Positions 4,344-53,462 of a stretch of DNA of 64,000 nt are shown here, piece after piece. The translations under genes and the position numbers were made by a program. The notes under the pieces are model-generated. The model was not told the origin of the DNA. It saw only the letters and a program-made list of their open reading frames with translations, and ran no database searches. The stretch is taken from the sequence record NC_041911.1. One strand, written 5' to 3'. The first letter of the stretch is position 1. The number at the start of each line of letters is the position of its first letter.

Positions 4344-6161
4344 TTACAGCGAGGCAATCGACTGATCGACGTACTTCATGATCGAGACGAATACTCGCCA
4401 CTCGCGCTGACAGATGGTGTCGTACAGCGAACCGCTGGTCGATTCATGCGCGTAAATCGCATTGATCGCCATATGCTGTTCGTCATTCATCATGTCCCAC
4501 AGATGGCGTACCGGACGATCGAATTCGAAGAAAGAGTCCTCATCGAGTGTTTGGTCATCCAGCGAACCTTTCAGCGATGGGTAGCCGCTTTCCATGGTGA
4601 TGAATTCAAATGCGGCGTTGAGGATTTCCCGCAGCTGCTCTACACTCTGGGCTTTTGGCATAGCAACCGGCACCGGATTGCTGTAGTCGATGTCGTAATA
4701 GACAATACCGGTTCGACCATACGTCAACTGTTTCATCTGCCCAGGATTGCCGCCGATCCAGCCGTCATACTTGCTGGATTCCTCATGGAACGTATTCCAT
4801 GCATTGGCAGCGCGTGCACGTTGTGCATTAGCCACCAGCGGCTTCATCGCTTCGTCCAGCACTTCCTGCGGCAGATCACCTTGACGATCCATCGCAGCGA
4901 CTACCGTCTTCTCGAAACGTTCGATCAGCGGCTTAACGATGCGAGCAAACTGTACTGCACTCTTGATCATGCGATCATTTACCGCCGTAGCTTCTTTCCA
5001 CGTCTTGGAAAGTGCGCGAGCGATTTCGTTCGGATTGGGACTGTGACCATTGATCGAAAGGATCAAGCCCGCATCAGTACCGAAGCTCTTGCCTGTCAGC
5101 TGGAAGGATTCCGGCGATTTCAAGAAGCTATTGCAATGTGCTAGGGCGCGCTGCATGTCGAACTTGTACATCGACTCTTCGTTGCTTTGCTGGGGTTTCT
5201 TCGACTTGAAGATGTCGAAGAAACCTTCCGTGGCCGGTTGACGAGCTACCAGTTTCTTGTCGAACATGGCGATGTACAAACCGCAAATGATCGGACCAAG
5301 CGTGTATTCCAGACTGTGCGCCAGATCAGCTACTTCGTAGCAACCTTGGCTGGAGCAGAGCTTACTGAAGATTTCATCACCGTTTTTGAGTTCGTCGTAT
5401 TCGATGGCGCTATCGAGACAATCCCAGTACGGAATGTAGTTGTCTTCAGAGAGCTTCATTGCCTCAGCACAGATTTTCATCAGCTCACGAATGGCTTCTG
5501 CGTAGTCCTTGGCGTTGTGTTCAGCTGGAGCTTCCACTTCACCGGATGTTTCAACACGTGGGAACTGGGTGAACTCTTCGTGATCGAGATTCTTGAAGTT
5601 GAACGGCCACGGGTATTGGTTATCGAAACCAAGCGCTGGCAAGGGCTTTTTGTACTGTTGCTGCGCGCGAGCGACTGGCGACTGCGTGAGCTGTTTAGCG
5701 TTGGCGTCCCAAAGCTTGTCGAGCGCTGCATTGTCCTTGATCTTGCAGGCTTGGTCCACCAGTTTGCGACGCAACTCGGTGTGAGGGCGTTCGCGCTGGA
5801 CGATAGCCTTGACCACTTCGAACATCCCGCGCGCCACGTACACAATGTCGCGTGGTTTGGCGAGTGCCTTACCATTCACGTTGGCATATGCCAACGCCGG
5901 CACCGTAATCATACCGGATTGATCAGCGAGGTTCTTCGTGACCCATTCCGGATTGTCATAAGTGCGCTGCAGGTCTTGTTCCAGATCCTTCGTCAGAGAC
6001 GTGTAGCTTTGACGATTGCTTTTATGCAACATCTCCACACGCTCTTCTTCCGGGGTCTTCTTCGCGAAGAGTTTCTTGAAGGTATCGATGAAACCCTCAC
6101 AAGCAGGACCGTATTCACCGATATAACGCTCGTGCTGCTCAGGAATGCTCAGGATTTTCAT
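4344..6161 (-). CDS. Putative internal head protein with two tandem modules
   Basis: Each half opens with a similar segment, PACE-GFIDTFKKLF and PATE-GFFDIFKSKK, matching the S/A/G-x-E motif cut by phiKZ-type prohead proteases. Confidence 0.55.
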   Translation of the reverse strand: MKILSIPEQHERYIGEYGPACEGFIDTFKKLFAKKTPEEERVEMLHKSNRQSYTSLTKDLEQDLQRTYDNPEWVTKNLADQSGMITVPALAYANVNGKALAKPRDIVYVARGMFEVVKAIVQRERPHTELRRKLVDQACKIKDNAALDKLWDANAKQLTQSPVARAQQQYKKPLPALGFDNQYPWPFNFKNLDHEEFTQFPRVETSGEVEAPAEHNAKDYAEAIRELMKICAEAMKLSEDNYIPYWDCLDSAIEYDELKNGDEIFSKLCSSQGCYEVADLAHSLEYTLGPIICGLYIAMFDKKLVARQPATEGFFDIFKSKKPQQSNEESMYKFDMQRALAHCNSFLKSPESFQLTGKSFGTDAGLILSINGHSPNPNEIARALSKTWKEATAVNDRMIKSAVQFARIVKPLIERFEKTVVAAMDRQGDLPQEVLDEAMKPLVANAQRARAANAWNTFHEESSKYDGWIGGNPGQMKQLTYGRTGIVYYDIDYSNPVPVAMPKAQSVEQLREILNAAFEFITMESGYPSLKGSLDDQTLDEDSFFEFDRPVRHLWDMMNDEQHMAINAIYAHESTSGSLYDTICQREWRVFVSIMKYVDQSIASL

Positions 6162-36105: not shown

Positions 36106-36879
36106 TTACCAGTTAGACCAAATGGCCTGCTGGCGGTTCTTTGCGGCTGCAGGAAGCTCCCAGCCGAAAGCATTCATCAGCTCGTGTACGTTGAGCTGAA
36201 CGCTTTCGTTGCCTACACCGCTGGCTTCGATGAGTTGGGTAGAACCCGCCTCGACTTGGCCGCGAGTGAAGGTGACGTCTTCCAGACCTTCCAGAGCCGG
36301 TGAGTTGAATTTCTCGGCGACAGCCATCCCCGGTTCGTTCACGTAGTCGAACGTGACGATCGTCTTGATGTAGCGATTGATGACACCTCGCTCCATTCGG
36401 TCGTCGGTGAACGAACGAATCGAGAAGCACACGTTCTCGGCCGGGTTCTGGAGTTGCTTTTCCAGTACATAGCCGAGCGGACCGTTCGGCGCCACCTCGG
36501 CGAGGATAGCGACGATAGGACGACCTTGATCATCCTTGTAGTTCTCGAAATCCAGCCAGACAGAGGCAAAGTGAACACAAACCTTGTCTTCGTGGATTTG
36601 CAACAGGCGTGCGTAGAACGCCTGCATCGACATCGCGGGATCGCGACGGGGGTGACCGTATTCGCCGCGCAATGCTCCGCGCTTGACGCGGCGCATGAAC
36701 GAGCTGGATTCCTCGAAGAACTGTTTCGCGGCATCAGCGCGGTAGTACATCCCGGCGCTGTTGAACATGTTCAACGCACCAATGACCATCACGTAGTAGC
36801 CGCGCTCATTCTTCTTCAAGTCACCCACCTTGTTCGTACCGTTCAGGCGGGTACAGGTGAATGTGACGTTGTTGAACAT
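36106..36879 (-). CDS. Prohead (head maturation) protease, phiKZ gp175-like
   Basis: LRGEYGHP, VCVHF (catalytic His region), CFSIRSF (catalytic Ser) and TFDYVNEPG. Syntenic with the vRNAP genes. Confidence 0.85.
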   Translation of the reverse strand: MFNNVTFTCTRLNGTNKVGDLKKNERGYYVMVIGALNMFNSAGMYYRADAAKQFFEESSSFMRRVKRGALRGEYGHPRRDPAMSMQAFYARLLQIHEDKVCVHFASVWLDFENYKDDQGRPIVAILAEVAPNGPLGYVLEKQLQNPAENVCFSIRSFTDDRMERGVINRYIKTIVTFDYVNEPGMAVAEKFNSPALEGLEDVTFTRGQVEAGSTQLIEASGVGNESVQLNVHELMNAFGWELPAAAKNRQQAIWSNW

Positions 36880-39393: not shown

Positions 39394-42300
39394 TTAACCG
39401 CCGCGGTAAGCCTTGATTACCCGTTTCGCTGCTACCATCAGCAGCGTCGTGGTGGTTCCAATGAGGTACGGCGAGGTCACGATACGATCCGCCACCGATT
39501 TAGCACCGAAGATAGCGTCAATCTCGACACCCGACTCCGAACGAACGTTGTCGTTGAATACCCGTCCGAAAACGGTCTTCATCTGGTTACCGAAGACGCC
39601 CTTGTCACCCACGCCGGCAGACACCTTCGCACTCATGTAAACACGAATGCAAGCAGTATCCATCAGCAGGGGGTCAGTGCCAATGCGGAACTCATCAGAC
39701 ACTTGGCCGGAGTAGGCCTTACGTCCAATGGAGGTGTTCCGGGCAGCGATCTTTTTATCCGAGAACATTGCGAGGGCGCGCAGAGACGGACTCATGTCTT
39801 CGAGATCGCCGTTGTAGTAGACCTCGATGCGCTCGATCTTACCCTTGATTTTGGCCTGGGGAGTTTGGGCACCCAGAACACGCAAGGTGTCCAGAGTTTC
39901 CTCGTCCAGGAATTGGTTTCGGGCCGAAAGCGCATCTTCAATGATGCATAACATACTTTCGGGCTCTACCGCTTCCCCTTCCTTAACCATGCGGTGAATC
40001 TCCTGGTCGAAGTTCACCACAATGTCCTTGATCTTGACCTGTTCCGTGATCAATTTCTTGGTCAGCTTCACAGAGATCGCAGACGAGTCCTCAAGAGTAT
40101 CCGGCGACTCCATCAGCGCCACTTTTGCCAGCGTTGCGGACTTCCAGATGATCTGCTTCGGATTGAGCATATCGCGCTCAAAGAACCCCGTGTTGTAGGC
40201 AATCGGCTCACCTACTTCAAAGGCTTGACCTTCCACCATATCGGTAGCGATGGTGTGCGGAATCGTGAGACCTGCGGCATTGCCGTAGCGACGCCCCAGC
40301 ACCACGCCCAGCTTCTCACCGTCAGCAAACTCGACAATGATACCGTCGGGCTTGACCGAGAGCACCTTACCGGGTTTCTTGGCCGTGACTGCGAACATGT
40401 CGCCCACGCGGTGGGGGATCACCTGCTCGTAGCCAGTCCGAACCATCGCCTGAGTGTAACCATCGCAGGCTACTACGTGACGGTTCTGAATACCGATAAA
40501 GTTCACCCGTTTCGGGTCGTCCTTGGTGGAACCAGGCGATACCAGCGCCGAGGTCGACAGCAGCGAAGTCGCACCACCCGTTGCCGGGTCATACGGCTTG
40601 CTCGTACCGCGCAGCGAGTTAAACTGCGGGTCAGCCGACGTAAACACGTTGATAGCCACATCGGACGAGTCCACCGTCGACTCAGAGATCACCCCCATGT
40701 CGTTGCGGTGGTAGATACGCGTAGACTTCACCATCGAGCGCGAACCACGACCACCCGTACCCGAGTAGGTCACTGCTTCGTTTTCTTTCAGGTTCTGGAT
40801 CGGGTTGATTTCCGATACCTGATCCTTGGCCGGGTCTTGCTGGATCGCAATCCACACAGCGTACGGATTGACTTCCAGACCGTAACGATGTTTGCCCGGA
40901 CGACCGTTGTGGATACGAACGGCACGCACCAGTTCCGAATACACGGCACCAGCAAAGCGCTCGTAGCCCTTGATCCGCATGTAGCGGGTATCTTGGCTAT
41001 CCGGGTGTTTGTCGTCAGTGAGCATTTCGCTCGCCCGCACCAACAGCTTGGTAAAGACCGTCGGTTCACCCATCTCGATCAACAGGTCACGGGTAATCGG
41101 ATCGACAAACATCTGTTCCAGCTGATCCAGCTCACGCAAGTAACGCACACCCAACTTCTTCTCTTCGAAGAGGTTGAAGTACACGTCCTTTTTGTTAAAC
41201 TCCTCGCTCGGGAAGCGAGAAGTCGTTTCGCTGAAATCACGCCAGCCACCCAACACCATCGTCGCCAGCTTGTCGCGACGCGAGAAGACGTACGTTTTGT
41301 CGTCGAAGTTAATCGACCACTCATCGTCCACCAGACCAGCGCGCTTACCCACCGGCACGATTCGCATCGACGGCGGATTCAACATGTGCAGTACGGCATC
41401 CCAGCCCAGCAGATAACCCAGTACCACACCCACCGGCACCAACTTACTGAACACCTTCAGTTCAGCAAACTCCACAGGGGCCTTACGGGCATCCAGACCG
41501 AGGATAGTCTCGATCGATGGAGCTGCACGCATCTCACCCTTGTACTCGTGGATGTAGAGGTTCTCGTCCCAGCCTACCAACAGCTCGGCCTTCGTTTCCT
41601 CATGCACGCCCATTACCACCATTGCTGGTTTCATGCGCAAGGTGATCATCTTCGACATGTCGAAGCTACACTTGAACGGCTTGCCTTCCACCATCAGCGT
41701 GAATTCACGGAAACCCATGGCAATCGCGCTGTAGGTACGCGGCGCGTAGACTTCCTTCTCGAAAGCCGAGCCCGGGATCATGTTGGTCACGATAGTGTCC
41801 GACACGTTCAGGCCGTGAGCCATGATCGCATTGCGAATCCACTTGCCCCAGTCGTTCACACGACGTTGGCTGCGTTCGGTGAACACCTTACCGTAGTAAC
41901 TGGTGAGAGCTACTTGGTCAGGTGCGATCTTACGGATTGGCATGTCGCCACGCTGCATCCGCATACGGTAGTTCACACCGTTGATCTTGAAGTTGCCTTC
42001 GTCGTCGACTTTCGGGATCTTCATTGGGATCGTCGAAGCAGCACCTTCAATCGGCTTAACGCGGATGCTGTACTCGTAATGAGAGCCGGTGATGTCTTCC
42101 ACCTCTTCCATCTCGTAGCTGTCAATCATAGTGCCAGCAGCTTGCAACTGAGATACCATCGACGAGATGTCGCGCTGCATCACTTCGCGAGAGTAGCGCT
42201 TGTTCCAGTCCAAGAGCGAACTCTTGAGCATGGTTTTGTCCACGATGGTTGCTTGGTCGGGAATCGCGGGCGACTCTTCGATCTTCAACTTCTCGGGCGG

Positions 42301-43845
42301 AACTTTGACGAACTCAGCCATTGTGCCTTCATGACCAAGCGGCGCAGGTGACTCATTGAAGCGTTGGCTAGCTTCCTGCATGCGACGGTATTCAGCCGCA
42401 GTGATAGCGCCGGTGTCAGCCGAACGAGCCAACAGAGCCTGGAAGGCTTCGTTGTGTTCCGTCGGAAAGAACTTCGGAGCCTTATGCGGCTGCATGTGCT
42501 CCGGAACATCACTCTGTCCTTGTGGCTGACCATGAGCTGCTTGAGCTTCGTGGTGCTCCGGCTGTCCGTGCGATGTCGCTGCCACTGGGTGTGCAGAGGC
42601 ATGGACTTCGGCCTGTTGAACCGGACTGTCGTCGATACCGGAGTCAGCTTCTTCCGTTTCATCCGGAATCTCGGGCAACGGAGCATGCTCGTCACCCTGA
42701 CCCGTGATTTCCAGCGCTTCCAGATCCTTGTCGATCTCAGCCAAGAGATTCAGACGATCAGTTTCCTCGTCATAGCCAGCGTAAGCTTGCGCTTCGGTCA
42801 ACTCACCGTCTTGTGTCGACGAAACCCGCGGAGAACCACTGGCTTCATCGGGAACTTCATCCGGTTGAGCGTCAGACTGCGCGGCTTGATCATCCAGTAC
42901 CTGCGTACTGCCCTGAGTGAGATCATCGTCGAGGCTTTCCGGCAGATCCTTGTTACGGACTTCGGTAATGGCCATCAGCATGCGCAGGAATACCTTTTGC
43001 AGCTGCGACGGTGCCCAGTTACCTTCCTTAATAGGAGGCAGTTCCGGGTTCTCTTCCAGACGAGCGGCGTACTCGGCTTCCTCGTGACGCGACGGCTTGC
43101 GCCATTCTTCGAACAGCGCCAGATCCAGAATAGTAAAGCGCTCACCTTCACGCAGGATCAGCTTCACATTCGAGATATCCGGAATGTACTTGTGGATCAG
43201 ACCAGTATGACGGTCTTCACCCATCCAGATCCAGAGATGATGCAGGAAGATCAGCTCGTAGCTGTTGAACACGCGCATGTTCTGCGTATTCCAACCCATC
43301 ACCGAACGATCCAGCACCGAACGAGCTGGTAGCTGCTGCGGCAATTGCAGCTCGATGTACTGATGGTAACCGGTCTTGGTGTTCTCGCCGATCGTGTGGA
43401 ACATCGTCGCGAAGACGTTGTGCCAGCGATTGTGGAACGTGAACAGGTTGCGCTGGTACTTGAAGCGAGTCAGCAACAGACCGTAGTTGTGCGTCACGAT
43501 AGCGCGCGGATCGCGCTTCATCGTTTCGACATCCATCGATGCACGGAACCGCGGGTTCTTCTGACGGAACACACGGATCTTGGCATTGACATCACCCGGA
43601 ATCGGACGCGGGTTACCGCGATTCTCCACCAGAGTGGTGTGGTGAGTGATGCGCAGAGGCTTGGTGTTCCGCTGATAGAACAGCATGTCTTCACTCGGCC
43701 ACGGGTTGGTTGCCGACGGACTGATGTAGTGAACCATCGCCAGATTCGGCAACTCGAACCGTGTCACCAACGGGATCGGCGGCTGAGTGAATTGCGCTGT
43801 TTTACGCAACACGAAGTTGCGGTAAAAAGTTTGGTATTGAATCAT
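39394..43845 (-). CDS. Virion RNA polymerase beta subunit, N-terminal part (phiKZ gp178-like)
   Basis: 1483 aa with KDDPKRVNFIGIQNRH, ALMESPDTLEDSSAIS, GDKGVFGNQMK and DAIFG beta-type motifs, plus an acidic low-complexity insertion near aa 300-470. Confidence 0.9.
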   Translation of the reverse strand: MIQYQTFYRNFVLRKTAQFTQPPIPLVTRFELPNLAMVHYISPSATNPWPSEDMLFYQRNTKPLRITHHTTLVENRGNPRPIPGDVNAKIRVFRQKNPRFRASMDVETMKRDPRAIVTHNYGLLLTRFKYQRNLFTFHNRWHNVFATMFHTIGENTKTGYHQYIELQLPQQLPARSVLDRSVMGWNTQNMRVFNSYELIFLHHLWIWMGEDRHTGLIHKYIPDISNVKLILREGERFTILDLALFEEWRKPSRHEEAEYAARLEENPELPPIKEGNWAPSQLQKVFLRMLMAITEVRNKDLPESLDDDLTQGSTQVLDDQAAQSDAQPDEVPDEASGSPRVSSTQDGELTEAQAYAGYDEETDRLNLLAEIDKDLEALEITGQGDEHAPLPEIPDETEEADSGIDDSPVQQAEVHASAHPVAATSHGQPEHHEAQAAHGQPQGQSDVPEHMQPHKAPKFFPTEHNEAFQALLARSADTGAITAAEYRRMQEASQRFNESPAPLGHEGTMAEFVKVPPEKLKIEESPAIPDQATIVDKTMLKSSLLDWNKRYSREVMQRDISSMVSQLQAAGTMIDSYEMEEVEDITGSHYEYSIRVKPIEGAASTIPMKIPKVDDEGNFKINGVNYRMRMQRGDMPIRKIAPDQVALTSYYGKVFTERSQRRVNDWGKWIRNAIMAHGLNVSDTIVTNMIPGSAFEKEVYAPRTYSAIAMGFREFTLMVEGKPFKCSFDMSKMITLRMKPAMVVMGVHEETKAELLVGWDENLYIHEYKGEMRAAPSIETILGLDARKAPVEFAELKVFSKLVPVGVVLGYLLGWDAVLHMLNPPSMRIVPVGKRAGLVDDEWSINFDDKTYVFSRRDKLATMVLGGWRDFSETTSRFPSEEFNKKDVYFNLFEEKKLGVRYLRELDQLEQMFVDPITRDLLIEMGEPTVFTKLLVRASEMLTDDKHPDSQDTRYMRIKGYERFAGAVYSELVRAVRIHNGRPGKHRYGLEVNPYAVWIAIQQDPAKDQVSEINPIQNLKENEAVTYSGTGGRGSRSMVKSTRIYHRNDMGVISESTVDSSDVAINVFTSADPQFNSLRGTSKPYDPATGGATSLLSTSALVSPGSTKDDPKRVNFIGIQNRHVVACDGYTQAMVRTGYEQVIPHRVGDMFAVTAKKPGKVLSVKPDGIIVEFADGEKLGVVLGRRYGNAAGLTIPHTIATDMVEGQAFEVGEPIAYNTGFFERDMLNPKQIIWKSATLAKVALMESPDTLEDSSAISVKLTKKLITEQVKIKDIVVNFDQEIHRMVKEGEAVEPESMLCIIEDALSARNQFLDEETLDTLRVLGAQTPQAKIKGKIERIEVYYNGDLEDMSPSLRALAMFSDKKIAARNTSIGRKAYSGQVSDEFRIGTDPLLMDTACIRVYMSAKVSAGVGDKGVFGNQMKTVFGRVFNDNVRSESGVEIDAIFGAKSVADRIVTSPYLIGTTTTLLMVAAKRVIKAYRGG

Positions 43846-43847
43846 GG

Positions 43848-45842
43848 TTAATCCAGACGAGCGATGTCAAGCGTGTCCTGATCGATGAACTTGATCTGAA
43901 CTTCCTTAACACCTTGGTCGTAAAGCTTGCGCAAACGATGGTTACCGTCGAGGACGTAGATCTTGCCTTTCTCACGAATGGCGATCAACGGGAACTGGGT
44001 ATCAGCGTTCTTCACGCGATCTGCATCCAGATCCTTAGCATCCTTGACATTCCACTCGACGTCCGACATCTTCACCGTTTCCGGTTTGATGTGTTCGGCA
44101 ACATCGAGTACGTCATTCAGATCGTACTTCACGCCCCAGTGGGAGAATGAGCCACCTTCCTCTTCCTGATAGCCTTCCAGCGCATTTACCAGCGAGAAAC
44201 TCTCGATGGCAGGCTTGGCTGGTTCACCGGTGAGACTATGCAGCACTAGCTCCACGGTATCCACCGCGCAACTATAGAGCAGCTTGCCATCAGTACCGAT
44301 ATAGGCTTTCTTAGTCTGGAAGAACTTCTCAGCTTCAGCAATAGCTTCATCCGAGTAAGCGATGTTGCCAGAGGCAGTGTCGCCATCGAAGTCAGCGCCC
44401 AGACGCTTCAGGTGGCTGGAGTGCGGGATCAGAGAGTTCACGAAAGCAGAACCCTGAACCGGGAACTCGTAGGCAACATAATCGTCACCTGCATCGATCC
44501 AGCTCTCATCCAGCATGCGGCGTTCTTCGTAACCAACCGTCACACGCAGGTGCGTCTTACTCGGATAGATCGAGCCGATACCCGTTACCGGATAGCGAGT
44601 CACGAAGAGCGGGTATTTACTGAACTTGCGATACACGGACAAATAAAACAAGTCCGTGAGCGTCAGCGGCCGCACGTGTTCGCGCAGCCGAGTCGGAGGC
44701 AGTTGATTGATGTCATTGAACACCTTGAACGTACCATCCGGCCCCAGATACAGCAGACCCAGGTAGTAACCGTCAATCACCAGCGGGGTGTTGCGGATGT
44801 CCTCTTCCTTGAAAGAAGAGATGATCTTTTCGATCCCTTCCGTCGTGGCCCACTTGTCGTAGTAACGCACGTGCAGGAAGACATCACGAGGCCGTAGGGT
44901 CTTCGGATCAACCAACACAGCGGGCGAATTGACGTCCGGGAACATCGGTGCGAGGAACTCGCGTACAGCGGCAACCGACACTGGCAACGAGGCCTGGAGA
45001 TATTGGTATAGACCGATGATCGTGGAGTTGAAGCCCGGGGTGCCTTTTTTGCCCAGAACCGGCACTGCCGTGTTCATGGCAGTGATCACGTTTCGTGTGC
45101 CGTTGAAGATACGGCGGGAAGCAACTTTACCGAGGAAGAGTTTCTTCTTCCCCTTGATCAGCGCTTCGATCATGTCGTACAGCGCCACGAAGTTCAGCTG
45201 CATGTCAAAACGCGGCTTGTCAATCACTTCAGCGTTGGTGTCGATAGACGACTCAACGATCACGTTCGAGAGTGCGATGAACTTGCGGTACAGAACGTTG
45301 ACTTCGTCTTCGCTCTTGCGGTTGAATTCATCGATTTCCAGATCGCGCAAGCCCGCTGGCATCACGACGATGTAGCGGGTAAGTCCCGTCTCTTTATGCG
45401 CTTCGACGAGCTTGATGTACTCGCTACGCAGGTTGGAGTTACCTTCCTCGTAAACGATGTCCTTCCAGTGCTCCAAGAAGAACGCATAGCCCGTGCGAGC
45501 CCCTTCAGAGGGCTTGGCCTTTACGAAGTCCTTCTTGCTGTCGTCCCAGAGCGCCCACACTTTGCCAGCCATGATGTCACCATACATGCGCTTGAGCTTG
45601 GTGATCGCCATGAAAATGAGCGGGTGGAAAATGGGCGCCTTGACGTCGATATAACCAAACAACAGGTTTCGTCGTTCGTCACCGACCCGGCCAAAGATTT
45701 CGGTCGAGAAGAGGCCTTCCGGGTGAAAGTTGGTAGTCGCGCCATCCAAGATGTCGAGCGCTTTCACCTGCTTGACGCTCTTCAACTTTTCAGGTGTGAG
45801 ATGGAGCAGCCCGATGTTAAAGGGCACAGACATTTTTTGCAT
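43848..45842 (-). CDS. Virion RNA polymerase beta-prime subunit, catalytic part (phiKZ gp180-like), with a C-terminal ParB/Srx-like extension
   Basis: FHPEGLFSTEIFG, VVMPAGLRD, RYPVT and the catalytic LGADFDGD. The extra C-terminal domain has FPLIAI...YVLDGNHRL. Start set at MQKMSV. Confidence 0.9.
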   Translation of the reverse strand: MQKMSVPFNIGLLHLTPEKLKSVKQVKALDILDGATTNFHPEGLFSTEIFGRVGDERRNLLFGYIDVKAPIFHPLIFMAITKLKRMYGDIMAGKVWALWDDSKKDFVKAKPSEGARTGYAFFLEHWKDIVYEEGNSNLRSEYIKLVEAHKETGLTRYIVVMPAGLRDLEIDEFNRKSEDEVNVLYRKFIALSNVIVESSIDTNAEVIDKPRFDMQLNFVALYDMIEALIKGKKKLFLGKVASRRIFNGTRNVITAMNTAVPVLGKKGTPGFNSTIIGLYQYLQASLPVSVAAVREFLAPMFPDVNSPAVLVDPKTLRPRDVFLHVRYYDKWATTEGIEKIISSFKEEDIRNTPLVIDGYYLGLLYLGPDGTFKVFNDINQLPPTRLREHVRPLTLTDLFYLSVYRKFSKYPLFVTRYPVTGIGSIYPSKTHLRVTVGYEERRMLDESWIDAGDDYVAYEFPVQGSAFVNSLIPHSSHLKRLGADFDGDTASGNIAYSDEAIAEAEKFFQTKKAYIGTDGKLLYSCAVDTVELVLHSLTGEPAKPAIESFSLVNALEGYQEEEGGSFSHWGVKYDLNDVLDVAEHIKPETVKMSDVEWNVKDAKDLDADRVKNADTQFPLIAIREKGKIYVLDGNHRLRKLYDQGVKEVQIKFIDQDTLDIARLD

Positions 45843-45861
45843 CGTAATCTCGTTTGGAATG

Positions 45862-45890
45862 TTATGCAGTAAGCGTTGACTGCTGCATAA
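45862..45890. promoter_or_regulatory. Inverted TATG pair, candidate bidirectional late promoter
   Basis: TTATGCAG-N13-CTGCATAA in the short gap between the divergent beta-prime and tape-measure genes. Confidence 0.4.
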
Positions 45891-45959
45891 ATCGCGCAGA
45901 CGCTGCATCACCAGATAGGTGGTGCTGGCGGCTGCATGGATTAAAGGAGCTTTTTGAAA

Positions 45960-48900
45960 ATGGCTACGATTGGTTTTAAGGCCAGTGACCAGAAGCTGAT
46001 GGACGATTTTGATAATTTCAATTTCGACGACTTCAACTTCGATGTCCCGGAGCCAAAAGACGACCGTCATCCGATTGTCAAGGCACTGGCGCCTATCGGC
46101 CGTGGGGCCAAGAACTACATTACCGATGCATCGAGCATCGAGAAGTTCGTTAAGGCCGCTATGCCGCGCGGCTATGGCCAAGCTTACGACCTCGCTCAAG
46201 AGGCGCGTAGTGAGGTGAAGCAGCTATACAATAGCGTCGGGGAGGAGATCAAGCCGGTTAAGGAATCGGCAAAGACTCTGATGCGCAAAGCGCTGCCCGC
46301 ATTGGATGGCAAGATCCCTAAGGGTCTGAAGGAAAAGCTGGAAGCCTTCTCGAAAGAAGAACAGCAATGGCAAGCCCGCCAGGGTGATCGCCGTGAAGAG
46401 CAACTGGGTGATTTGCTGAAGAGTATCTTCGAGCAGAAAGCCACGGATCAAGTTGCGCAACGTAACGAACTGAATGAACGCGAGAAAGTCCGTCAGGGCT
46501 TCGAGCAGATTCGTCACCGCGACCAAATCAGTCAGCTGGATGCTATCCGTCTGGCTGTCGAGTCGCAAGCTCAATACCAGAACAAGATCGGTTACAGCGT
46601 CCAGAAGAAACAACTGGAACTGTCCTATCGTACGTTCTGGGCAATGGCTGATCTGAATAAGGAACAGAAGCGGAGTAACGCTGAGTTCCTGTCCGAGCTG
46701 AAGGCAGTTACTCGTAACACCAGTCTGCCCGACATGGCTAAGATCAGCCTGATGAAAGACTACAAGTCGATCATCCGCAACAAGTTCTTGGAGAACGCCC
46801 GTGAAGGGATGTTCGGTGGTGCGCAGGACTATTTCCGTAAGTTCTCGCGCAACATCAAGGACCAGGTCGTAGGACGTGTCCGTGATTATGCCGGTATGGC
46901 TGGTACGATGAGTGCTGGTGCAGAAGGCATGGCAGGGATGATGGAAGGCATGGGTGACATGCCTGGCTTCAATGCACGCGATGAAATGATCGCTGGCTTG
47001 ATGCATCTCCCGATGGACTGGCTGGCAGAAAAGGCAGGCCGCAAGGCTAACGCTATTCTGGCCAAGAACAAGAAGCTGCGTCGTGGCGGTAGCCGTGCGT
47101 CGTACATGGTCAATACGGTCGGCGATCGTATCCATGAACAGCTGACTGATCCGACCAAGGGTTGGGGTAGTCTGGAAGGCCTGCGCGAACTACTCGCTAG
47201 CGCAGCACCATCGAGTGTGCCGGATTCGAAAATGGAGGTCGATTCGCTCGACCGTGCCCATGAGCCGCGCCCGTTCTCTCGCGGTAATGCCAAGAGTCTG
47301 GATGAAGTAATCCCGGGCCTGCTGGCACGTATCCATCGCGAGATCAAGATTCTGCGCACGGGTGACGAAAGCACTCCGCTGGTCACGTACGACTTCGCGA
47401 AGAACAAGTTCAGCACCGAGAAGCAGATGGGTTCGGATCTGCGTAAGCGGATTGCCGGTGGTAACACCGACCGTGCCAATCACTTCGCCAACAACATCAT
47501 CAACCGTATCGATCGCGGCAAGAAGCTGACGCCTGAACAGCGTGAGCGTGCCCGGCAGCACTTGATTGAGCGGGCAGTGATGGGTGAGTCGATTGACATT
47601 ACCAAATCGCACCTGGGTAGTCACTGGGGTGGTGGACAGGATGGTCAGGCAATCGCTGATTCGTTCAGCCGTTATCTGCGCTCCACTGATGGCAAGCTGG
47701 GCAACAACGATCAGGCGTACAAGCGTCAGATCGAACTGATGCAGCAGCATCGCGGTATCGTCGGCGGTATTGGCGACCCGCGAGTTCTGCTGCAACAGAT
47801 GGTCAACTCCGGCCAGCTGGAAACCCTCAAGAACATCGGTATTATCGATGAGAACAACAACCTCGACCGCAAGGCCTACTCCCAGTGGCTGATGCATGCA
47901 GAAGAGGCTGATCTGTCATCTCCTGCTTCCACTACCTCTGGAGGCGGTAAGTCGTTCCGCCGTACTCCGGGTTCGCGTCGTCGTGCAGCGCCTAGCGCTG
48001 GTATGAGTGACTTCATTCCGCGTACGTCGAGTAAGGGCGCAATGGGCGGTGGCGCAGCTCATGAGCTGCGCAGCTTGAACGAGTCGCTCTCCAACAGTAC
48101 GGTCGAAAAGAACGTACAGACGATTGCGGATCTTCTGGCAAGCTTGGATTCCAAGTACGCTCATGCTGCAGAAGTCAACTACCTTACGCTGCAGGCAATG
48201 CTGGACCAGTTGATCGCTATTGCTTCTACGAGTGGCGGAATGGGTGGTTCTGGTGGACAAGGTCCTCTTGATCTTCTCACCAAAGGTAAGCGTGCCTATA
48301 CCTCGCTGTGGGAGCACGTGAAGGGTTCGAGTCGTGAAGGCTTGGATCGGATCAAGGCCCATGGTAAGTCGATGGCTGCTCGCGGTATGCAGCTATGGGA
48401 CAAATACTCTCCTGGCGCTAAACGCCGGGTGGGCGATATCCTAGGCGCTGGTCGTGACAAGTTGAAAGACATGCACGGTCGTCTGCGCGACTACTACGGT
48501 GACGTGGTGGTGAGTGGGGAAAGCTTCCCGCGTCTGCGCGCTAACCTGCTTAAAGCGGGTGAGTATCGCGACCGTCTGACGGGTCGAGTGCTCACTTCGT
48601 TGGAAGACATCACGGGTGATGTGGTGGATTCTTCCGGTAACTTGGTGATCACGCTGGACGAGTTCTACAACTCCTACGTGACCGGCACGATCAACAAGCG
48701 AGTGCGCGAGCTGTTCACCAACGTAACCTCGAAGCTGGCCGATTGGAAGTCTCGGCTACAGGTCTTCATCCCGAGCACCATCCGGGATCTGAAGTCCAAG
48801 GCATTGGGTGCGTTGAACCGCGTGAAGGAAATGCTGCCACCTTACGATGTGTACGTGAAGAACGACATGTCGAAGCCGCTGCTGTTCGCCAACATGTTCC

Positions 48901-51900
48901 GCTACGAGATGTACACGTCTGCGAAGACGGGCAACGCCCTCAAGCATCCTCGCGATATTGATGGCCCGGTGCTCGACGACAAAGGCAACATGGTACTGAC
49001 TGAAGATCACATCAAGGTCGGTCTGTGTGACGTAGTGGGTGATCCGATCACTTCTGCTCGGATTCCGATTAAGATCATGCGCAAGGCCAAGGCGGCCTGG
49101 GAGATGATGCGTGATGCTGCTGTGGGTATCTTCGGTGCACTGAAAGGTGGGCTGGGGAATGTGAATGAGTATTTCAAGAACTTCTTCACGCCTTTTGCAG
49201 ACATTATCACCAACTCCAAGAAGACGGTGACGTTGCTCGAAGCCATCCGGGATATCTTGGATGATCGACTGCCGAAACGTAAGAAAGTGCGTGGTGACGT
49301 CGATGGCGATGGTATCCGTGAGGGTTCCATTGAAGACATCCATCGCAAGCGTGACCAAGCGATGGCTCTGACGCATGACAAGGCAGCGGGTCGTGACCCG
49401 AATGCTGACATCAAGGCTGGTCAGGGTATGATCGGTAAGCTGTTGGGGGCTCTCTTCGGTAAGAAGAAAGCCGAGGAGGATGAAGAAGGTCACCATCACG
49501 GCGGTTCGCTGCTGGACGATGTAGCCGATGTTGCCGATATCTACGATGACCTTAAAGGCGGTCGTGGGGCTCGTGGCAGCGCTGAACGTCGCGCAGCAGC
49601 TAAGGCACGACTGAAGCGTATGCGTGGCGCTAAACCCGGTTTCCTGCGCCGTGGCGTGGGTGCATTGGGCAAGCTGGGTAAAGGTGCGCTCGGCCGTCTC
49701 GGTAAGTGGGGTCTGTTCAACACGGATCTGGTTCGCGGAGTAGGTAAGGTAGCTGGCGGTATCGGCAGCCCTCTGTTGCGCGGTGCTGGTAAAGTGGCTG
49801 GCGGCCTTGGTAGCTTGGCCGTGGGTGCTGGTCGTGGTCTGATGGGTCAGAGCAAGCTTGCTCGTCTGGCTCGTTGGGGCATGTTCAATACTGACTTGGT
49901 ACGTGGCGGGGCTAAAGGCCTTGGTTGGGCTGCTAAGGGCTTGGGTGCGGCTGCGAAGCTTGCGCCTCGTGCTCTGGGTCTGGCTGGTACGGCTTACAGC
50001 GCTTACAGTGCTTACGATAACATCAAGCAAGGCAATTACGGTGCTGCAGCACTGGATGCCGGTTTGGGTCTTGGTGGTATGGCACTGACTGGCGGCGGTT
50101 TGGCTGGTCTTGCCAGTATGGGTGGTGCGGCGATGGGTGGCTTGGGCGCAGTTCTGGCCTCGCCATTCCTGTTACCTGCTCTGGGTGTAGCTGCTGTAGG
50201 TGCGGCTGGTTATGCGCTGTACAAGTATTCCCAGAAGACCAAACCAACTAACCTGTCGAAGCTGCGTCTGGCTCAGTACGGTATCGCTGAAGACGACACT
50301 GATGCTCGTGACAAGATCTTCCAGTTGGAGCAAATGCTGGAAGATCACATGACCATCCGTGAAGACGGCAACATGATGCTCGATGAGAAAGGCGTCAAGC
50401 TCGAAGAGATCGCAGACCTGTTCGATATCCATCGTGAGAAGGACATGCAGTTGTTCAACATGTGGTACAAGCGGCGCTTCGTGCCGGTGTATCGCAAGTG
50501 GCTCACGGAAATGCGTAAGTTCGATAAGGGTGCGAAAATCGCCAAGATCGAAAGCGTGATTCCGGGTAAGAGCAAGCTGAGTGTCGCTTCGAGCGCTGTG
50601 TCTAGCTGTATGGATGCTTACTCGCACATGGTCGGTTGGAGCAATGCACGTCCGGAGCTGGCAGTTGATGCTAACGGCGTGCAAGCTGTTCTGGATTCGA
50701 TGCGTGTGGATCTCGCTAAAGATGCTGAAAAGGACGGAGGGCCGAAAGCAACAGCAGTAGCTAAAGATGGTGTATCGTCGACTACCGAGGCTAGTGCGTT
50801 GGCTGCGAAAGCACTGACGGACAAAGCGCATTACCAAGTGAAGGATCAAAAAGGAAATGTGCTGGATGCGGCATCCATGAACGTGGGTGAGTTGACGGAG
50901 AAGATCAAGAAAGGTTCATTGACTGTTAGTGTGGCTGTGACGCTTCCAGCGTCGCTGGTTCACAATGACAAGACCCATCTGGATGCTCTGGCAAGTATCC
51001 GTTACAAAGCCTACGGTTTGACCCACTTGTCGGCGGACAAAGTTCGCATGCTGGGTGCAATGGAACTCTTCATCGGTGACCACATCACGGATGATCCGGA
51101 TTCGCCTAAACTCAACATCTCGACGGAAGTCGTGATGAAGGCGGCTGGTGAAGTCTTTGGTGTGCCTAACATGACGGGTGAACATGCAACGCGCTGGAAG
51201 ACCTGGTTCAATGGTCGTTTCCTTCCAGTGTTCTTGATGTGGGCTGGTACGATTCGTAAGAAGACGGGCAAGACCAAACTTCAAGAAGCCAGCGATGCCT
51301 TCTCGATCGAAGACCAACTCTCGTTGGCGCGCGCAATCATTGGCGCGACTGGCGTGAACGCCGACGGTTCAAAAGTGCCGGTTTGGCAGATCCTTACCAA
51401 TCCTTGGCAAGATGACTACGAGCTGAACAGCGACCCGGACTCGACTGCCGGTAACTTGGAAGCAATTCGTCTGTTGGCTGACAAGGTGAAGTTGGGACAG
51501 GTCTCGGCCTCCCAGCTGCCGAACAAGCGCAAAGAACCGGTGGTTTGGTACAAGCCATGGACGTGGGGAAATGCTATCAATGAAAAAGTTGGTGGCAAGA
51601 GTCCGAACGGTAAGCAAGGTGCAGGTGTTAACGCTACAGGTGATTCCATCACTGGTGCGACCGGTAGTAAGGGCGCTGCTGCATTGTCAGGGATGGGTGA
51701 TCCGGTCTCCTTCTCTGGCGGCGGCGGTGGTAACTACACTGAGCTGCCGGCTTCGAGTGGTAATGGCTGGTCTGCAAACCGTGCGCTGATTCTGGCGGCG
51801 GCTAAGATGGCAGGTGTCGATCCTAAGGCCCTGATTGCAACCATCGCGATCGAATCGGGCTTTAACCCGAATGCTGCACCGAAGAATCCGAATCTGCCGT

Positions 51901-53462
51901 CCTCTGCAAAGGGGTTTGGTCAGCATCTGGATTCGAGTTGGCTGGAAGACTTGCAACGGGATGGTCGGAAGTTTGGTATCCCGAACGGTACGAGTCAGTT
52001 TGATCCGCGTGCAAGTGCGCTGATGACCGCAATGCGGCTGAAGTACAATGCTCAGGCTTTGCAAAAGGCTCTGGGTCGTCAGCCGACGGTGACCGATCTG
52101 TATCTGGCGCACCTGATGGGTACTGGTGGTGCTACGAAGTTCTTGAAAGCGCCGCAAGACGCAATCGGAGCTGAAGAGGCACCGACCGCAGCTAAGCAAC
52201 ACCCGACCTACTTCTACGAAGGTTCGCGTGCACTGACTGTGAAGGAAGTGTATGCGAAGTTTGCTGCGAAGGTAGCCAAACGCCCTGCTGAATTTGGGGT
52301 GACGGATACTGATATGAAGTCTGTTGGCTCCGTGGGTTCTGGTGCGACTCCTCCGCCGGCTTCTGGCGGTGGTGCTCCGCCTCCTGCTGCTCCTGCAAAA
52401 GCAGGTGCTGCTTCTGCTGGTCCCGCTCCTCGCGGTTCTGGCGGCGCCCCGGGGAAGGCAACATCAGCAAACACACCTTCGGCTGGCTCGCCGCGTCTGA
52501 ACGCGCCGGTGACGATGGATAAGGGTCACGCTGCAACGATGGGTACTGGTCCTGCTATCGTGAAGTCGAAAGATGCCAAGTACGAACTGATCCTCCAACG
52601 GGAAGAATCCGAGGATGATGGTACGTACGGTACACTGCGACTGCCCGATGGCACCACGCTCAATACGTTGGAGCTGCCGTGGCGAAACAACGAATCCAAA
52701 ATCTCATGCATCCCGCCGGGTTCCTACCCGTGTAAAAAGCGTCCGTCCGCGGCCTTCGGGAGAGAAATGTACGAGGTTGGACAAGTTCAGGGTCGTAGCG
52801 GTGTCTTGATTCACGCGGGTAATGCTGCTGGATCGGCAGACAAGGGTATGAAGGCGGATAGCCAAGGTTGTATCCTCTTGGGTATGGACCGGGGCCGTCA
52901 GGGTAATCAAAAGGTTATCACTGCGTCCAAAGCCGCTATGCAGCTTTTCAATGAGAAAATGCAAGACATGCCCTTTACGCTGATCATCCGTCCTGGTAAG
53001 GGTGGTCTTGGTACTGGTGATTCGAAGGCTAACGTAAGCTTCGATCCGGTTCGTGGTCCTGCTAACACAGGCGCACAGCCGGGCGCCGGTAACGGAATGC
53101 CTGCAGTACGTAAGCAGTCTTCTGCCGCTGGTGGTGGCTATGCAGATTCGGTAGCTACCGGTTCCGATCTGCCGCGTTATAACACAACGTCGACAGGTCT
53201 GAATACTGGCGGCCCAACCCGGGCTGACATGAGGGGTCGTGATGCAGCCATGTCGGATACGATTGGTCCTAAGCTGGATAACGTGGCTAACACGTTGTCG
53301 AAGATTGCGGACTCGTCGGATCAGGGCGTGGGAGTTTTGCGTCAGATCCTTGCAGTCATGAAGGGCAAGGGTGATGGTGATAAGCCGCCTTCGGTATCGG
53401 CAAACAAAGTGCGTCCGGAAACGGACACATCCGTTCCGGTTCCGCAGCGTCGCAACTTCTAA
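45960..53462 (+). CDS. Tape-measure/tail-associated lysin (phiKZ gp181-like) with lytic transglycosylase and DUF5675-like domains
   Basis: About 2,500 aa, helical with Gly/Ala-rich hydrophobic tracts. SLT motif AIESGFNPNA...AKGFGQ near 51780-52280 and LIHAGN...DSQGCILLG near 52580-52995. AAAGGAG RBS. Confidence 0.85.
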   Translation: MATIGFKASDQKLMDDFDNFNFDDFNFDVPEPKDDRHPIVKALAPIGRGAKNYITDASSIEKFVKAAMPRGYGQAYDLAQEARSEVKQLYNSVGEEIKPVKESAKTLMRKALPALDGKIPKGLKEKLEAFSKEEQQWQARQGDRREEQLGDLLKSIFEQKATDQVAQRNELNEREKVRQGFEQIRHRDQISQLDAIRLAVESQAQYQNKIGYSVQKKQLELSYRTFWAMADLNKEQKRSNAEFLSELKAVTRNTSLPDMAKISLMKDYKSIIRNKFLENAREGMFGGAQDYFRKFSRNIKDQVVGRVRDYAGMAGTMSAGAEGMAGMMEGMGDMPGFNARDEMIAGLMHLPMDWLAEKAGRKANAILAKNKKLRRGGSRASYMVNTVGDRIHEQLTDPTKGWGSLEGLRELLASAAPSSVPDSKMEVDSLDRAHEPRPFSRGNAKSLDEVIPGLLARIHREIKILRTGDESTPLVTYDFAKNKFSTEKQMGSDLRKRIAGGNTDRANHFANNIINRIDRGKKLTPEQRERARQHLIERAVMGESIDITKSHLGSHWGGGQDGQAIADSFSRYLRSTDGKLGNNDQAYKRQIELMQQHRGIVGGIGDPRVLLQQMVNSGQLETLKNIGIIDENNNLDRKAYSQWLMHAEEADLSSPASTTSGGGKSFRRTPGSRRRAAPSAGMSDFIPRTSSKGAMGGGAAHELRSLNESLSNSTVEKNVQTIADLLASLDSKYAHAAEVNYLTLQAMLDQLIAIASTSGGMGGSGGQGPLDLLTKGKRAYTSLWEHVKGSSREGLDRIKAHGKSMAARGMQLWDKYSPGAKRRVGDILGAGRDKLKDMHGRLRDYYGDVVVSGESFPRLRANLLKAGEYRDRLTGRVLTSLEDITGDVVDSSGNLVITLDEFYNSYVTGTINKRVRELFTNVTSKLADWKSRLQVFIPSTIRDLKSKALGALNRVKEMLPPYDVYVKNDMSKPLLFANMFRYEMYTSAKTGNALKHPRDIDGPVLDDKGNMVLTEDHIKVGLCDVVGDPITSARIPIKIMRKAKAAWEMMRDAAVGIFGALKGGLGNVNEYFKNFFTPFADIITNSKKTVTLLEAIRDILDDRLPKRKKVRGDVDGDGIREGSIEDIHRKRDQAMALTHDKAAGRDPNADIKAGQGMIGKLLGALFGKKKAEEDEEGHHHGGSLLDDVADVADIYDDLKGGRGARGSAERRAAAKARLKRMRGAKPGFLRRGVGALGKLGKGALGRLGKWGLFNTDLVRGVGKVAGGIGSPLLRGAGKVAGGLGSLAVGAGRGLMGQSKLARLARWGMFNTDLVRGGAKGLGWAAKGLGAAAKLAPRALGLAGTAYSAYSAYDNIKQGNYGAAALDAGLGLGGMALTGGGLAGLASMGGAAMGGLGAVLASPFLLPALGVAAVGAAGYALYKYSQKTKPTNLSKLRLAQYGIAEDDTDARDKIFQLEQMLEDHMTIREDGNMMLDEKGVKLEEIADLFDIHREKDMQLFNMWYKRRFVPVYRKWLTEMRKFDKGAKIAKIESVIPGKSKLSVASSAVSSCMDAYSHMVGWSNARPELAVDANGVQAVLDSMRVDLAKDAEKDGGPKATAVAKDGVSSTTEASALAAKALTDKAHYQVKDQKGNVLDAASMNVGELTEKIKKGSLTVSVAVTLPASLVHNDKTHLDALASIRYKAYGLTHLSADKVRMLGAMELFIGDHITDDPDSPKLNISTEVVMKAAGEVFGVPNMTGEHATRWKTWFNGRFLPVFLMWAGTIRKKTGKTKLQEASDAFSIEDQLSLARAIIGATGVNADGSKVPVWQILTNPWQDDYELNSDPDSTAGNLEAIRLLADKVKLGQVSASQLPNKRKEPVVWYKPWTWGNAINEKVGGKSPNGKQGAGVNATGDSITGATGSKGAAALSGMGDPVSFSGGGGGNYTELPASSGNGWSANRALILAAAKMAGVDPKALIATIAIESGFNPNAAPKNPNLPSSAKGFGQHLDSSWLEDLQRDGRKFGIPNGTSQFDPRASALMTAMRLKYNAQALQKALGRQPTVTDLYLAHLMGTGGATKFLKAPQDAIGAEEAPTAAKQHPTYFYEGSRALTVKEVYAKFAAKVAKRPAEFGVTDTDMKSVGSVGSGATPPPASGGGAPPPAAPAKAGAASAGPAPRGSGGAPGKATSANTPSAGSPRLNAPVTMDKGHAATMGTGPAIVKSKDAKYELILQREESEDDGTYGTLRLPDGTTLNTLELPWRNNESKISCIPPGSYPCKKRPSAAFGREMYEVGQVQGRSGVLIHAGNAAGSADKGMKADSQGCILLGMDRGRQGNQKVITASKAAMQLFNEKMQDMPFTLIIRPGKGGLGTGDSKANVSFDPVRGPANTGAQPGAGNGMPAVRKQSSAAGGGYADSVATGSDLPRYNTTSTGLNTGGPTRADMRGRDAAMSDTIGPKLDNVANTLSKIADSSDQGVGVLRQILAVMKGKGDGDKPPSVSANKVRPETDTSVPVPQRRNF

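Follow-up and report, generated by a model that had tools for sequence, protein, structure and literature searches.

Polyvalent proteins, as described by Iyer et al. (2017), are argued to be packaged and injected and to act in the first moments of invasion; their ParB/Srx (ParB/sulfiredoxin) modules are predicted to sense or hydrolyse nucleoside triphosphates (NTPs) or to act as NTP-gated DNases, and the single-subunit virion RNA polymerase (RNAP) of phage N4 is already counted among them (PMC5512222). In phage T4, IPI-III and Alt enter the prohead, are trimmed after Glu in a short motif by the gp21 protease, are retained and are then injected (PMC5694885). The multisubunit virion-associated RNA polymerase (vRNAP) of jumbo phages is packaged as an assembled multimer (PMC5694885). 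About 10 polymerases are present per phiKZ virion, and a phiKZ gp180 subunit carrying mCherry at its N terminus was assembled into the virion polymerase, packaged at 7 ± 4 per particle, injected, and found to co-localise with incoming DNA (PMC10612078). Here we analyse ORF42 of Ralstonia phage RP12, an open reading frame (ORF) in a 64,000-nucleotide (nt) stretch of record NC_041911.1 (the window; it corresponds to bases 1-64000 of AP017924.1, with identical coordinates and a 100% match), which joins the N-region subunit of the polymerase β′ chain (β′-N) to a C-terminal tail with a predicted ParB/Srx fold.

ORF42 resembles the polyvalent proteins in that a putatively enzymatic ParB/Srx module is attached to a packaged, probably injected protein, and relatives of its tail are joined to Phage_Mu_F (MuF), ART-PolyVal, lysin and metallopeptidase domains. 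Its carrier, however, is a subunit of a multisubunit jumbo-phage polymerase, and it has only two modules and no embedded peptidase, so a separate prohead protease would do any processing. The route proposed below parallels that of the T4 proteins, but whereas T4 cargo loses an N-terminal tag of ~10 residues, the ORF42 ‘tag’ would be a 62-kDa enzyme subunit lying upstream of the putative cargo. The carrier itself is a subunit of the type of phiKZ gp180 and SPN3US gp240 (PHROG 2986). Residues 1-541 of ORF42 make up a full-length orthologue of these proteins, with DFDGD, the same gene order and presence in the virion; the gp180/gp240-type subunit stops at LTG, whereas RP12-like phages append a linker and a 108-residue ParB/Srx domain.

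The discoverers of RP12 listed ORF42 as the N-region of the β′ subunit of the vRNAP and as the phiKZ gp180 orthologue (PMC5468394), and we find in it the full-length homology, the catalytic DFDGD motif, and the synteny with the β-N subunit and protease genes that characterise the phiKZ-type β′-N subunit. The PHROG 2986 profile (539 positions) spans residues 1-538 (E 3.6e-211). A first-pass annotation of the window, made by a model from the sequence, had placed the end of the β′ homology near VLHSLTGEP (residues 533-541), and this holds, as the profile stops at residue 538 and the FLC9 and phiKZ orthologues end there. The strings that it quoted were all found in ORF42 at the places it gave. Burkholderia phage FLC9 gp41 is the closest tail-less relative (52% identity), and it terminates three residues past its LTG. 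Exon 2 of phiKZ gp180 aligns with RP12 only to residue 541, after which gp178 adjoins; a group I intron that carries gp179 follows the catalytic motif, which is why the annotated gp180 coding sequence ends there. Among 322 matching phage records, the full query is covered only in RP12, RP31, FLC1-1B and FLC4-3B, and the others end near residue 540; 317 records align to about residues 1-540 only. The annotation had described phiKZ gp180 as having no such tail, which is correct, and the alignment of orthologues that it had called for shows that the tail is not a standard part of the subunit, being absent from phiKZ, FLC9, RSL2/RSF1 and most other orthologues.

The phiKZ intron (Rfam RF00028, 92.2 bits) sits at DFDGD of the β′-N gene in NC_004629.1 179000-190000 (contig L017, 7397-7718, minus strand). 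A metagenomic relative also has an RF00028 group I intron within β′-N at DFDGD (L015, 2084-2468, plus strand, 57.6 bits), and in two partial contigs, L011 and L016, the gene appears to be interrupted once in the same region. The RP12 DFDGD site (44379-44393) is without an intron.

The first-pass annotation also predicted that the tail of about 100 residues has a ParB/Srx fold with a conserved motif, a prediction that profile searches, structure prediction and structure comparison bear out. PHROG 17560 (119 positions, function unknown) matches residues 557-658 over profile positions 4-109 (E 6.4e-19 to 1.4e-17). The Pfam model PF08857 ParBc_2, a putative ParB-like nuclease, scores 20.5-20.9 bits on the tail (E about 5e-4), under its 23.6-bit gathering threshold, and matches only 1 of 64 family members at E ≤ 0.01, so the ParB/Srx assignment rests on profile search and fold. 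These 64 sequences form an alignment, A2, of mostly stand-alone homologues of the tail. When the A2 profile was compared with solved structures, it matched the ParB/Srx-fold serine kinase SbnI (E 6e-7), whose D-G-V-H-R aligns on the tail motif, and more weakly ParB of H. pylori (E 0.025) and sulfiredoxin (E 0.69). AlphaFold2 (AF2) modelling on A2, the structure prediction that the annotation had proposed as a check, recovered the ParB/Srx fold with a predicted local distance difference test score (pLDDT) of 88.6 and a predicted template modelling score (pTM) of 0.79; its N-terminal 14 residues are disordered. In a Foldseek comparison with the PDB, the ~50 best matches all belong to the ParB/Srx superfamily, among them sulfiredoxin, CTP-bound ParB, Noc, SbnI, SerK, PadC, 1vk1, Osa and KorB, with probabilities of 0.9-1.0 but E values of 1.6e-3 to 0.17 and TMq of 0.31-0.50. 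The nearest models in BFVD are phage proteins named ParB/Sulfiredoxin domain-containing, including phage EL ORF075, with E values down to 1e-9.

The pocket motif is the most constant part of the family. D, G, H and R of D-G-x-H-R are invariant in 64/64 members, and the full set of invariant positions is P618, D632, G633, H635 and R636, with Y558, E560, Y573, W597, R609 and K639 nearly invariant; the RP12 tail retains every family-invariant residue. Based on the alignments and the model, the placement of the tail in the ParB/Srx superfamily, with its conserved Gly-x-x-Arg-type phosphate-binding motif intact at the start of the core helix, is sound. With a pI of 4.8 and a net charge of -8, the RP12 tail is acidic; PADLOC gave no match to it. 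A word-based protein search with the tail alone gave just 2 matches, so an exhaustive phmmer search over 1.8 billion cluster representatives was needed; this yielded 699 proteins at E ≤ 1e-3, a figure that includes some repeat artefacts and is therefore an upper bound. Many large proteins on this list (600-5900 residues; for example P0006-P0012, P0014 and P0016) match only tail residues ~65-100, through 6-10 repeated stretches that resemble the strand-turn-strand ahead of the motif, and these were set aside as repeat artefacts.

Closer memberships within the superfamily fail. SbnI and SerK (PDB 5uje, 5ujd, 6nr6, 5x0b) are the best solved-structure relatives by profile, and D-G-x-H-R and the ParB/Srx core are common to both them and the tail. 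They are, however, ~240-250 residues long and complete their substrate site with a second domain, whereas the tail consists of the core and a family-specific N-terminal Y-x-E segment. A free serine kinase of this type was rejected because the second domain is absent and the alignment is limited to the N-domain core (query 55-108 to SbnI 30-85); the NCBIfam SbnI model scores 12 bits on the tail against a cut-off of 350. Sulfiredoxin chemistry was rejected as well, the catalytic Cys before His-Arg being replaced by Asn in RP12, and Cys is not one of the five residues that occur there most often across the family (L, A, F, Y and N). With the CTP-dependent clamps ParB, Noc and KorB the tail shares the fold of the N-terminal domain, but it has no helix-turn-helix, dimerisation domain or arginine-rich box (box II of canonical ParB), and its motif is of the His-Arg type. 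Nothing lies downstream of the 108-residue domain, and there is no ParA or parS context. A canonical partition ParB or CTPase clamp was rejected for these reasons, and the label ‘chromosome partitioning protein ParB’ on homologues in Erwinia phages is name transfer only. The annotation's idea of a CTP switch that loads RNAP on DNA is unlikely to hold for a domain of ~108 residues without a DNA-binding or dimerisation domain and with a motif of the SbnI/SerK/Srx type.

Judged by comparison of genomes, ORF42 is a genuine, evolutionarily maintained fusion. Body and tail share one open frame in the cultured phages RP12, RP31, FLC1-1B and FLC4-3B, and the same architecture is found in the database proteins P0003 and P0153-P0158 (663-701 residues) and in the partial P0001. 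Identity to RP12 is 71-89% over the bodies of these RP12-like fusions and 44-70% over the tails, which puts the evolutionary rate of the tail at two to three times that of the body. Fusions further removed from RP12 are encoded on contig L015 (P0050; body 47% identical to RP12, tail about 34%), where the β-N gene comes next with a 4-nt overlap, and on contig L016 (P0113), which has the same layout of body end, linker and tail in one frame. Two further proteins, P0094 and P0103, are probably fusions as well, a judgement based only on the resemblance of the ~25 residues just ahead of the domain to the β′-N end. FLC9 (52%) and RSL2/RSF1 (42%) have no tail and no stand-alone copy detectable by tblastn, and they fall between fused lineages in similarity, so the distribution is patchy.

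The RP12 genome holds the fused copy of the domain and no second one. Its tail is nearer to the stand-alone 111-residue P0002 (58-62%) than to the L015 tail (34-43%), each range reflecting the choice of alignment; P0002 sits among small same-strand genes, in an array found on contigs as long as 243 kb. The stand-alone P0002 and P0005 nest among fused tails in a neighbour-joining tree of domain sequences that is crude and carries no support values. Fusion and separation have probably occurred more than once, although support for this is weak. These comparisons describe the fusion as a patchy but recurrent architecture that is not unique to RP12.

Between the conserved body end and the Y-Q-E of the domain lies a linker of 15 residues, and the two prohead-protease motifs that the first-pass annotation saw after the body end are both within it. 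Site 1 is [A/G]-x-E in 9/10 RP12-like lineages, where x is I, V, N, T, M or L (T and V in two lineages each), and Ser occupies P1′ in 6/10; site 2 is [A/S/G]-x-E in 9/10 lineages, and every lineage has at least one of the two. Stand-alone homologues begin exactly at the nearly invariant Y-Q-E that comes after site 2. The prohead protease of SPN3US cleaves at A-x-E with Ser preferred at P1′, that of phiKZ at S/A/G-x-E, and that of 201phi2-1 at S/A/G/T-x-E (PMC5694885, PMC10052503), and the ORF42 motifs, as sequences, match these published specificities of the phiKZ-family (MEROPS S80) enzymes. The sole A-x-E of the RP12 protease, ORF37, is PALE-G (residues 195-197), which shares ALEG with site 2. 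The SPALE of ORF37 aligns with the same motif of phiKZ gp175 and marks where the divergent C-terminal region begins; proteases of this group remove their own poorly conserved C-terminal region (PMC5694885).

In shuffled sequences, two A-x-E motifs fell inside this 15-residue linker in 0.12% of cases and within 15 residues anywhere in the protein in 11%. Because of these chance estimates the motif evidence from a single sequence is just suggestive, and its weight comes from conservation across lineages. A-x-E is not enriched in the whole ORF42 protein (3 observed, 2.8 expected), nor is it significantly depleted in the β-N subunit or neighbouring head proteins. The linker has low pLDDT in both AF2 models and is disordered in the model of the domain. 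The full-length model, built from 9 fusion sequences, has a mean pLDDT of 46 and a pTM of 0.29 and says nothing on tail docking or linker exposure.

We consider the strongest support for the idea that the tail would be cargo to be the behaviour of the PHROG 17560 domain on other carriers. Besides occurring as a stand-alone gene of ~110 codons, whose copies sit in arrays of small same-strand genes, the domain forms the C-terminal 100 residues of gp126 of Xanthomonas phage Xoo-sp14, of which residues 16-927 are a PHROG 3004 jumbo-phage virion structural protein; the two parts are joined by an acidic linker, a long Glu-rich low-complexity run. In phage PA5oct it is the C-terminal half of a 249-residue protein flagged as virion-detected by electrospray-ionisation tandem mass spectrometry (MS). 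Metagenomic proteins join it to Phage_Mu_F (‘minor head protein and DNA pilot’), ART-PolyVal, a GH19 lysin with a second ParB_N, GNAT, and an M48 peptidase; such partners are the repertoire of injected polyvalent proteins (PMC5512222). The Xoo-sp14 gp126 domain (L005, MT939492.1, 3956-4315) has Lys in place of the otherwise invariant His of D-G-x-H-R, and the same record contains a second, separate match to the domain.

For the RP12-type fusion itself, virion presence has been measured in RP31, whose orthologue (ORF39, 99.5% identical) was identified in virions by 26 peptides at 41% coverage (PMC5468394, Table S3). In relatives the polymerase has been shown to be assembled into the prohead and to leave the head together with the DNA; in RP12 the tail, made in advance in the previous host, would for this reason arrive in the cell just as infection begins, and if numbers are as in phiKZ, each virion would carry about ten copies of it. 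The tail thus probably enters the bacterium along with the polymerase and the phage DNA. The intact D-G-x-H-R pocket suggests a nucleotide-binding or -hydrolysing enzyme, whether an NTPase, a kinase-like enzyme or an NTP-gated nuclease, and we suggest that it would act early as a take-over or counter-defence effector and not in RNA synthesis. Since the linker holds two conserved prohead-protease-type motifs, the protease may free the domain in the head, although the one available measurement points to most of the protein remaining at full length. In our judgement the best explanation as a whole, held at slightly better than even confidence, is a maintained fusion whose tail is delivered with the polymerase as a nucleotide-dependent early effector, possibly released in the head.

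The first-pass annotation had the tail travelling as piggy-back cargo and being cut free in the head. Carriage is well supported, by the in-frame fusion to a virion-detected subunit, the recurrence of the domain on packaged proteins and the injection of the gp180 fusion, but the putative cutting meets contrary evidence. In gel-MS of RP31 virions the orthologue was observed at 74 kDa against a predicted 75.2 kDa, and so apparently intact (PMC5468394, Table S3), whereas cleavage would give a computed body of 61.8-62.8 kDa and a tail of 12.5-13.4 kDa. The SPN3US vRNAP subunits are listed without processing, the β subunit explicitly so, and 13 of 14 mapped SPN3US sites remove N-terminal propeptides (PMC5694885, PMC10052503). 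Among the four distant, partly inferred fusions, only 2/4 linkers contain [S/A/G]-x-E. The reading of the tail as an effector meets further difficulties: a literature search found no biochemical data for any PHROG 17560 member, and a simple non-specific nuclease is disfavoured relative to an NTPase or kinase-like enzyme because the tail is acidic and has no DNA-binding module. Also, in Chimalliviridae the injected vRNAP remains with the phage DNA in the early compartment (PMC10612078), so a tethered tail would meet phage DNA and not host DNA. All of these weigh against the explanation that we prefer.

How far the RP31 masses bear on cleavage depends on the table itself. Of its 32 proteins nearly all have gel masses close to the theoretical ones, and the major head protein is one of these, at 75 versus 76.8 kDa (PMC5468394), while studied relatives trim capsid and portal proteins by 111-254 residues. 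As the table tracks predicted masses even for the major head protein, it may be insensitive to processing: either RP31 processes less, or its mass table fails to resolve processing. A trimming length for the phiKZ capsid protein, sought in PMC11297242 to calibrate the table, was not found there. The annotation had also cited a ‘polyprotein’ at 4344-6161 of the window (minus strand) as companion evidence for a fusion-and-cleavage system, but that gene was rejected as such, having no Pfam domain, a match only to the lineage-specific PHROG 28669 of unknown function, and A-x-E at expectation (5 observed, 4.6 expected). On the motif conservation and the published specificities, set against these masses, release of the tail inside the head by the protease is a tentative proposal that we hold at somewhat below even confidence.

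Because a tethered tail would sit with the phage DNA, a cis-acting accessory role stays the main rival. The tail would then be a permanently attached accessory domain of the vRNAP, with a structural linker and no cleavage site, and it could, for example, bind nucleotides, hydrolyse them or touch the template during ejection, aiding host-independent early transcription. The full-length mass of the RP31 protein and the unprocessed SPN3US subunits agree with this, as does the linker, in which the non-motif residues S-L-x-[DN]-[AS]-L are conserved too and a short helix is predicted at 551-554. On the other hand, the domain needs no RNAP, since it exists as a stand-alone gene and on MuF, ART, lysin and PHROG 3004 carriers, and its faster evolution relative to the body is atypical of a docked subunit. 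The accessory role also draws on rifampicin sensitivity: the tailed RP12 and RP31 replicate in rifampicin and the tail-less RSL2 and RSF1 do not, although their polymerase genes form the same set, and to explain this the authors invoked unknown RP12/RP31-specific factors (PMC5468394). The tail is one clear difference between the rifampicin-independent and the rifampicin-sensitive phages. However, this correlation comes from two pairs of phages, between which about 25% of the genome content differs, and replication of phiKZ is reported to be rifampicin-resistant as well (PMC5468394), so the tail, which phiKZ does not have, is not required for rifampicin resistance or for host-independent transcription. 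Overall, we regard a permanent role in cis as unlikely, although it is the strongest of the alternatives.

A second alternative is that the tail is a C-terminal propeptide used in the producing cell only, where it would, for example, suppress the activity of the late-made polymerase or guide that enzyme into the prohead, before being clipped at the linker and cleared from the head so that nothing is delivered. The conserved protease-type motifs would serve such a propeptide equally, propeptides normally exit the head (PMC10052503), and C-terminal pieces are removed from T4 Alt as well as from the protease itself (PMC5694885). But the RP31 protein runs at full length, orthologous polymerases assemble and are packaged without a tail, and known propeptides are cut small and do not resemble a folded 108-residue domain whose pocket looks enzymatic and is strictly conserved; the stand-alone and MuF/ART-fused homologues also argue for a role in the next host. 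We find this explanation quite improbable.

An artefact or neutral accident, in which a sequencing error or the loss of a stop codon between neighbours left a functionless joined state, could draw on the existence of the domain as an independent gene elsewhere and on the nesting of P0002 and P0005 among fused tails, but it is very improbable, because at least 10 independently sequenced RP12-like genomes and contigs keep the open frame and the conserved linker at body identities down to 71% (which rules out the sequencing error that the first-pass annotation had named as a possible refutation), the distant L015 and L016 likewise keep a single frame from the β′-N end into the tail, every family-invariant residue is intact, and the fused product was found in RP31 virions at its fused mass.

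Delivery of the tail with the polymerase as an early effector can be extended into a more specific scheme. Jumbo phages would use conserved head-packaged proteins as carriers for ParB/Srx enzymes, the prohead protease would free the enzyme at an [S/A/G]-x-E site by the natural N terminus of the domain, and a nucleotide-dependent enzyme would enter with the DNA in about ten free copies before any phage gene expression; the carriers may be the β′-N subunit in RP12-like phages and the PHROG 3004 structural protein in Xoo-sp14. Taken with all its parts together, this scheme is speculative, and we rate it a little lower than the accessory role in cis. A bolder version, drawn from the distribution of the tail, is that it may be among the RP12/RP31-specific factors behind the rifampicin-independent start of infection.

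The gene model of ORF42 and the features discussed here are collected in the table. The stop codon occupies 43848-43850, and the PHROG 2986 profile aligns from residue 1 of the product that starts at the ATG at 45842, an extent also given by GenBank and by the RP12 paper (PMC5468394). A mechanical ORF list had started ORF42 at a TTG at 46199, 119 codons upstream; this start was rejected and the extension is non-coding. It (45843-46199) crosses a divergent intergenic region of 117 bp (45843-45959) and then the opposite-strand start of ORF43. ORF41, encoding the β-N subunit, begins 3 nt past the ORF42 stop, and ORF37 lies on the same strand a few genes downstream. ORF37 is labelled ‘putative virion structural protein’ in GenBank; the PHROG 3014 match makes it the head maturation protease, and it is 35% identical to phiKZ gp175. 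The gene order in RP12 is that of the phiKZ gp175-gp180 block: protease, structural protein, head protein of ~490 residues, β-N, β′-N. The divergent ORF43 (45960-53462, plus strand, 2500 residues) stands in place of phiKZ gp181 (tail-associated lysin); its Pfam content is DUF5675 only (residues 2212-2335), and its RP31 orthologue was seen by virion MS at about 260 kDa (PMC5468394).

Table 1. Positions in the window of ORF42, its parts and the associated genes.
Feature	Position	Strand	Basis or remark
ORF42: vRNAP β′-N subunit with C-terminal ParB/Srx tail	43848..45842	minus	664 aa + stop; translation, PHROG profiles, AP017924.1
β′-N body, residues 1-541, ending in LTGEP	44220..45842	minus	full-length PHROG 2986 match; orthologues end there
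Catalytic DFDGD motif, residues 484-488	44379..44393	minus	translation
Linker, residues 542-556 (AKPAIESFSLVNALE), 15 aa	44175..44219	minus	between conserved body end and Y-Q-E of the domain
Site 1: A545-I546-E547, then Ser (PAIE-S = 544-548)	44202..44210	minus	conservation across lineages
Site 2: A554-L555-E556 (NALE-G = 553-557)	44175..44183	minus	one residue ahead of Y-Q-E
ParB/Srx-fold domain (PHROG 17560 family), residues 557-664 (108 aa)	43851..44174	minus	AF2, Foldseek, profile search
D-G-N-H-R pocket motif, residues 632-636	43935..43949	minus	alignment of family; SbnI alignment
ORF41: vRNAP β-N subunit, gp178 orthologue	39394..43845	minus	PHROG 3148, E 0; PMC5468394
ORF37: prohead (head maturation) protease, phiKZ gp175 family	36106..36879	minus	PHROG 3014, E 2.9e-94

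Several elements of this picture are already known, namely the ParB/Srx assignment of the family in automatic annotation, injected multi-domain effectors, the N4 polymerase as a carrier, and trimming by the T4 prohead protease. What is new is the architecture on a multisubunit jumbo-phage polymerase, the conserved linker motifs, and PHROG 17560 as a recurrently virion-targeted module; a literature search found no paper mentioning an ORF42-type fusion. The published mCherry fusion to phiKZ gp180 is N-terminal (PMC10612078), and the natural fusion shows that the C terminus of β′-N tolerates cargo, previously not shown for that end. The fusion also yields a concrete prediction on processing by the prohead protease, and it marks PHROG 17560 as a widespread module that has been targeted to virions repeatedly. 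The first minutes of infection, when phage genes have yet to be read, are decided by the cargo injected with jumbo-phage DNA, which besides the polymerase is largely uncharacterised.

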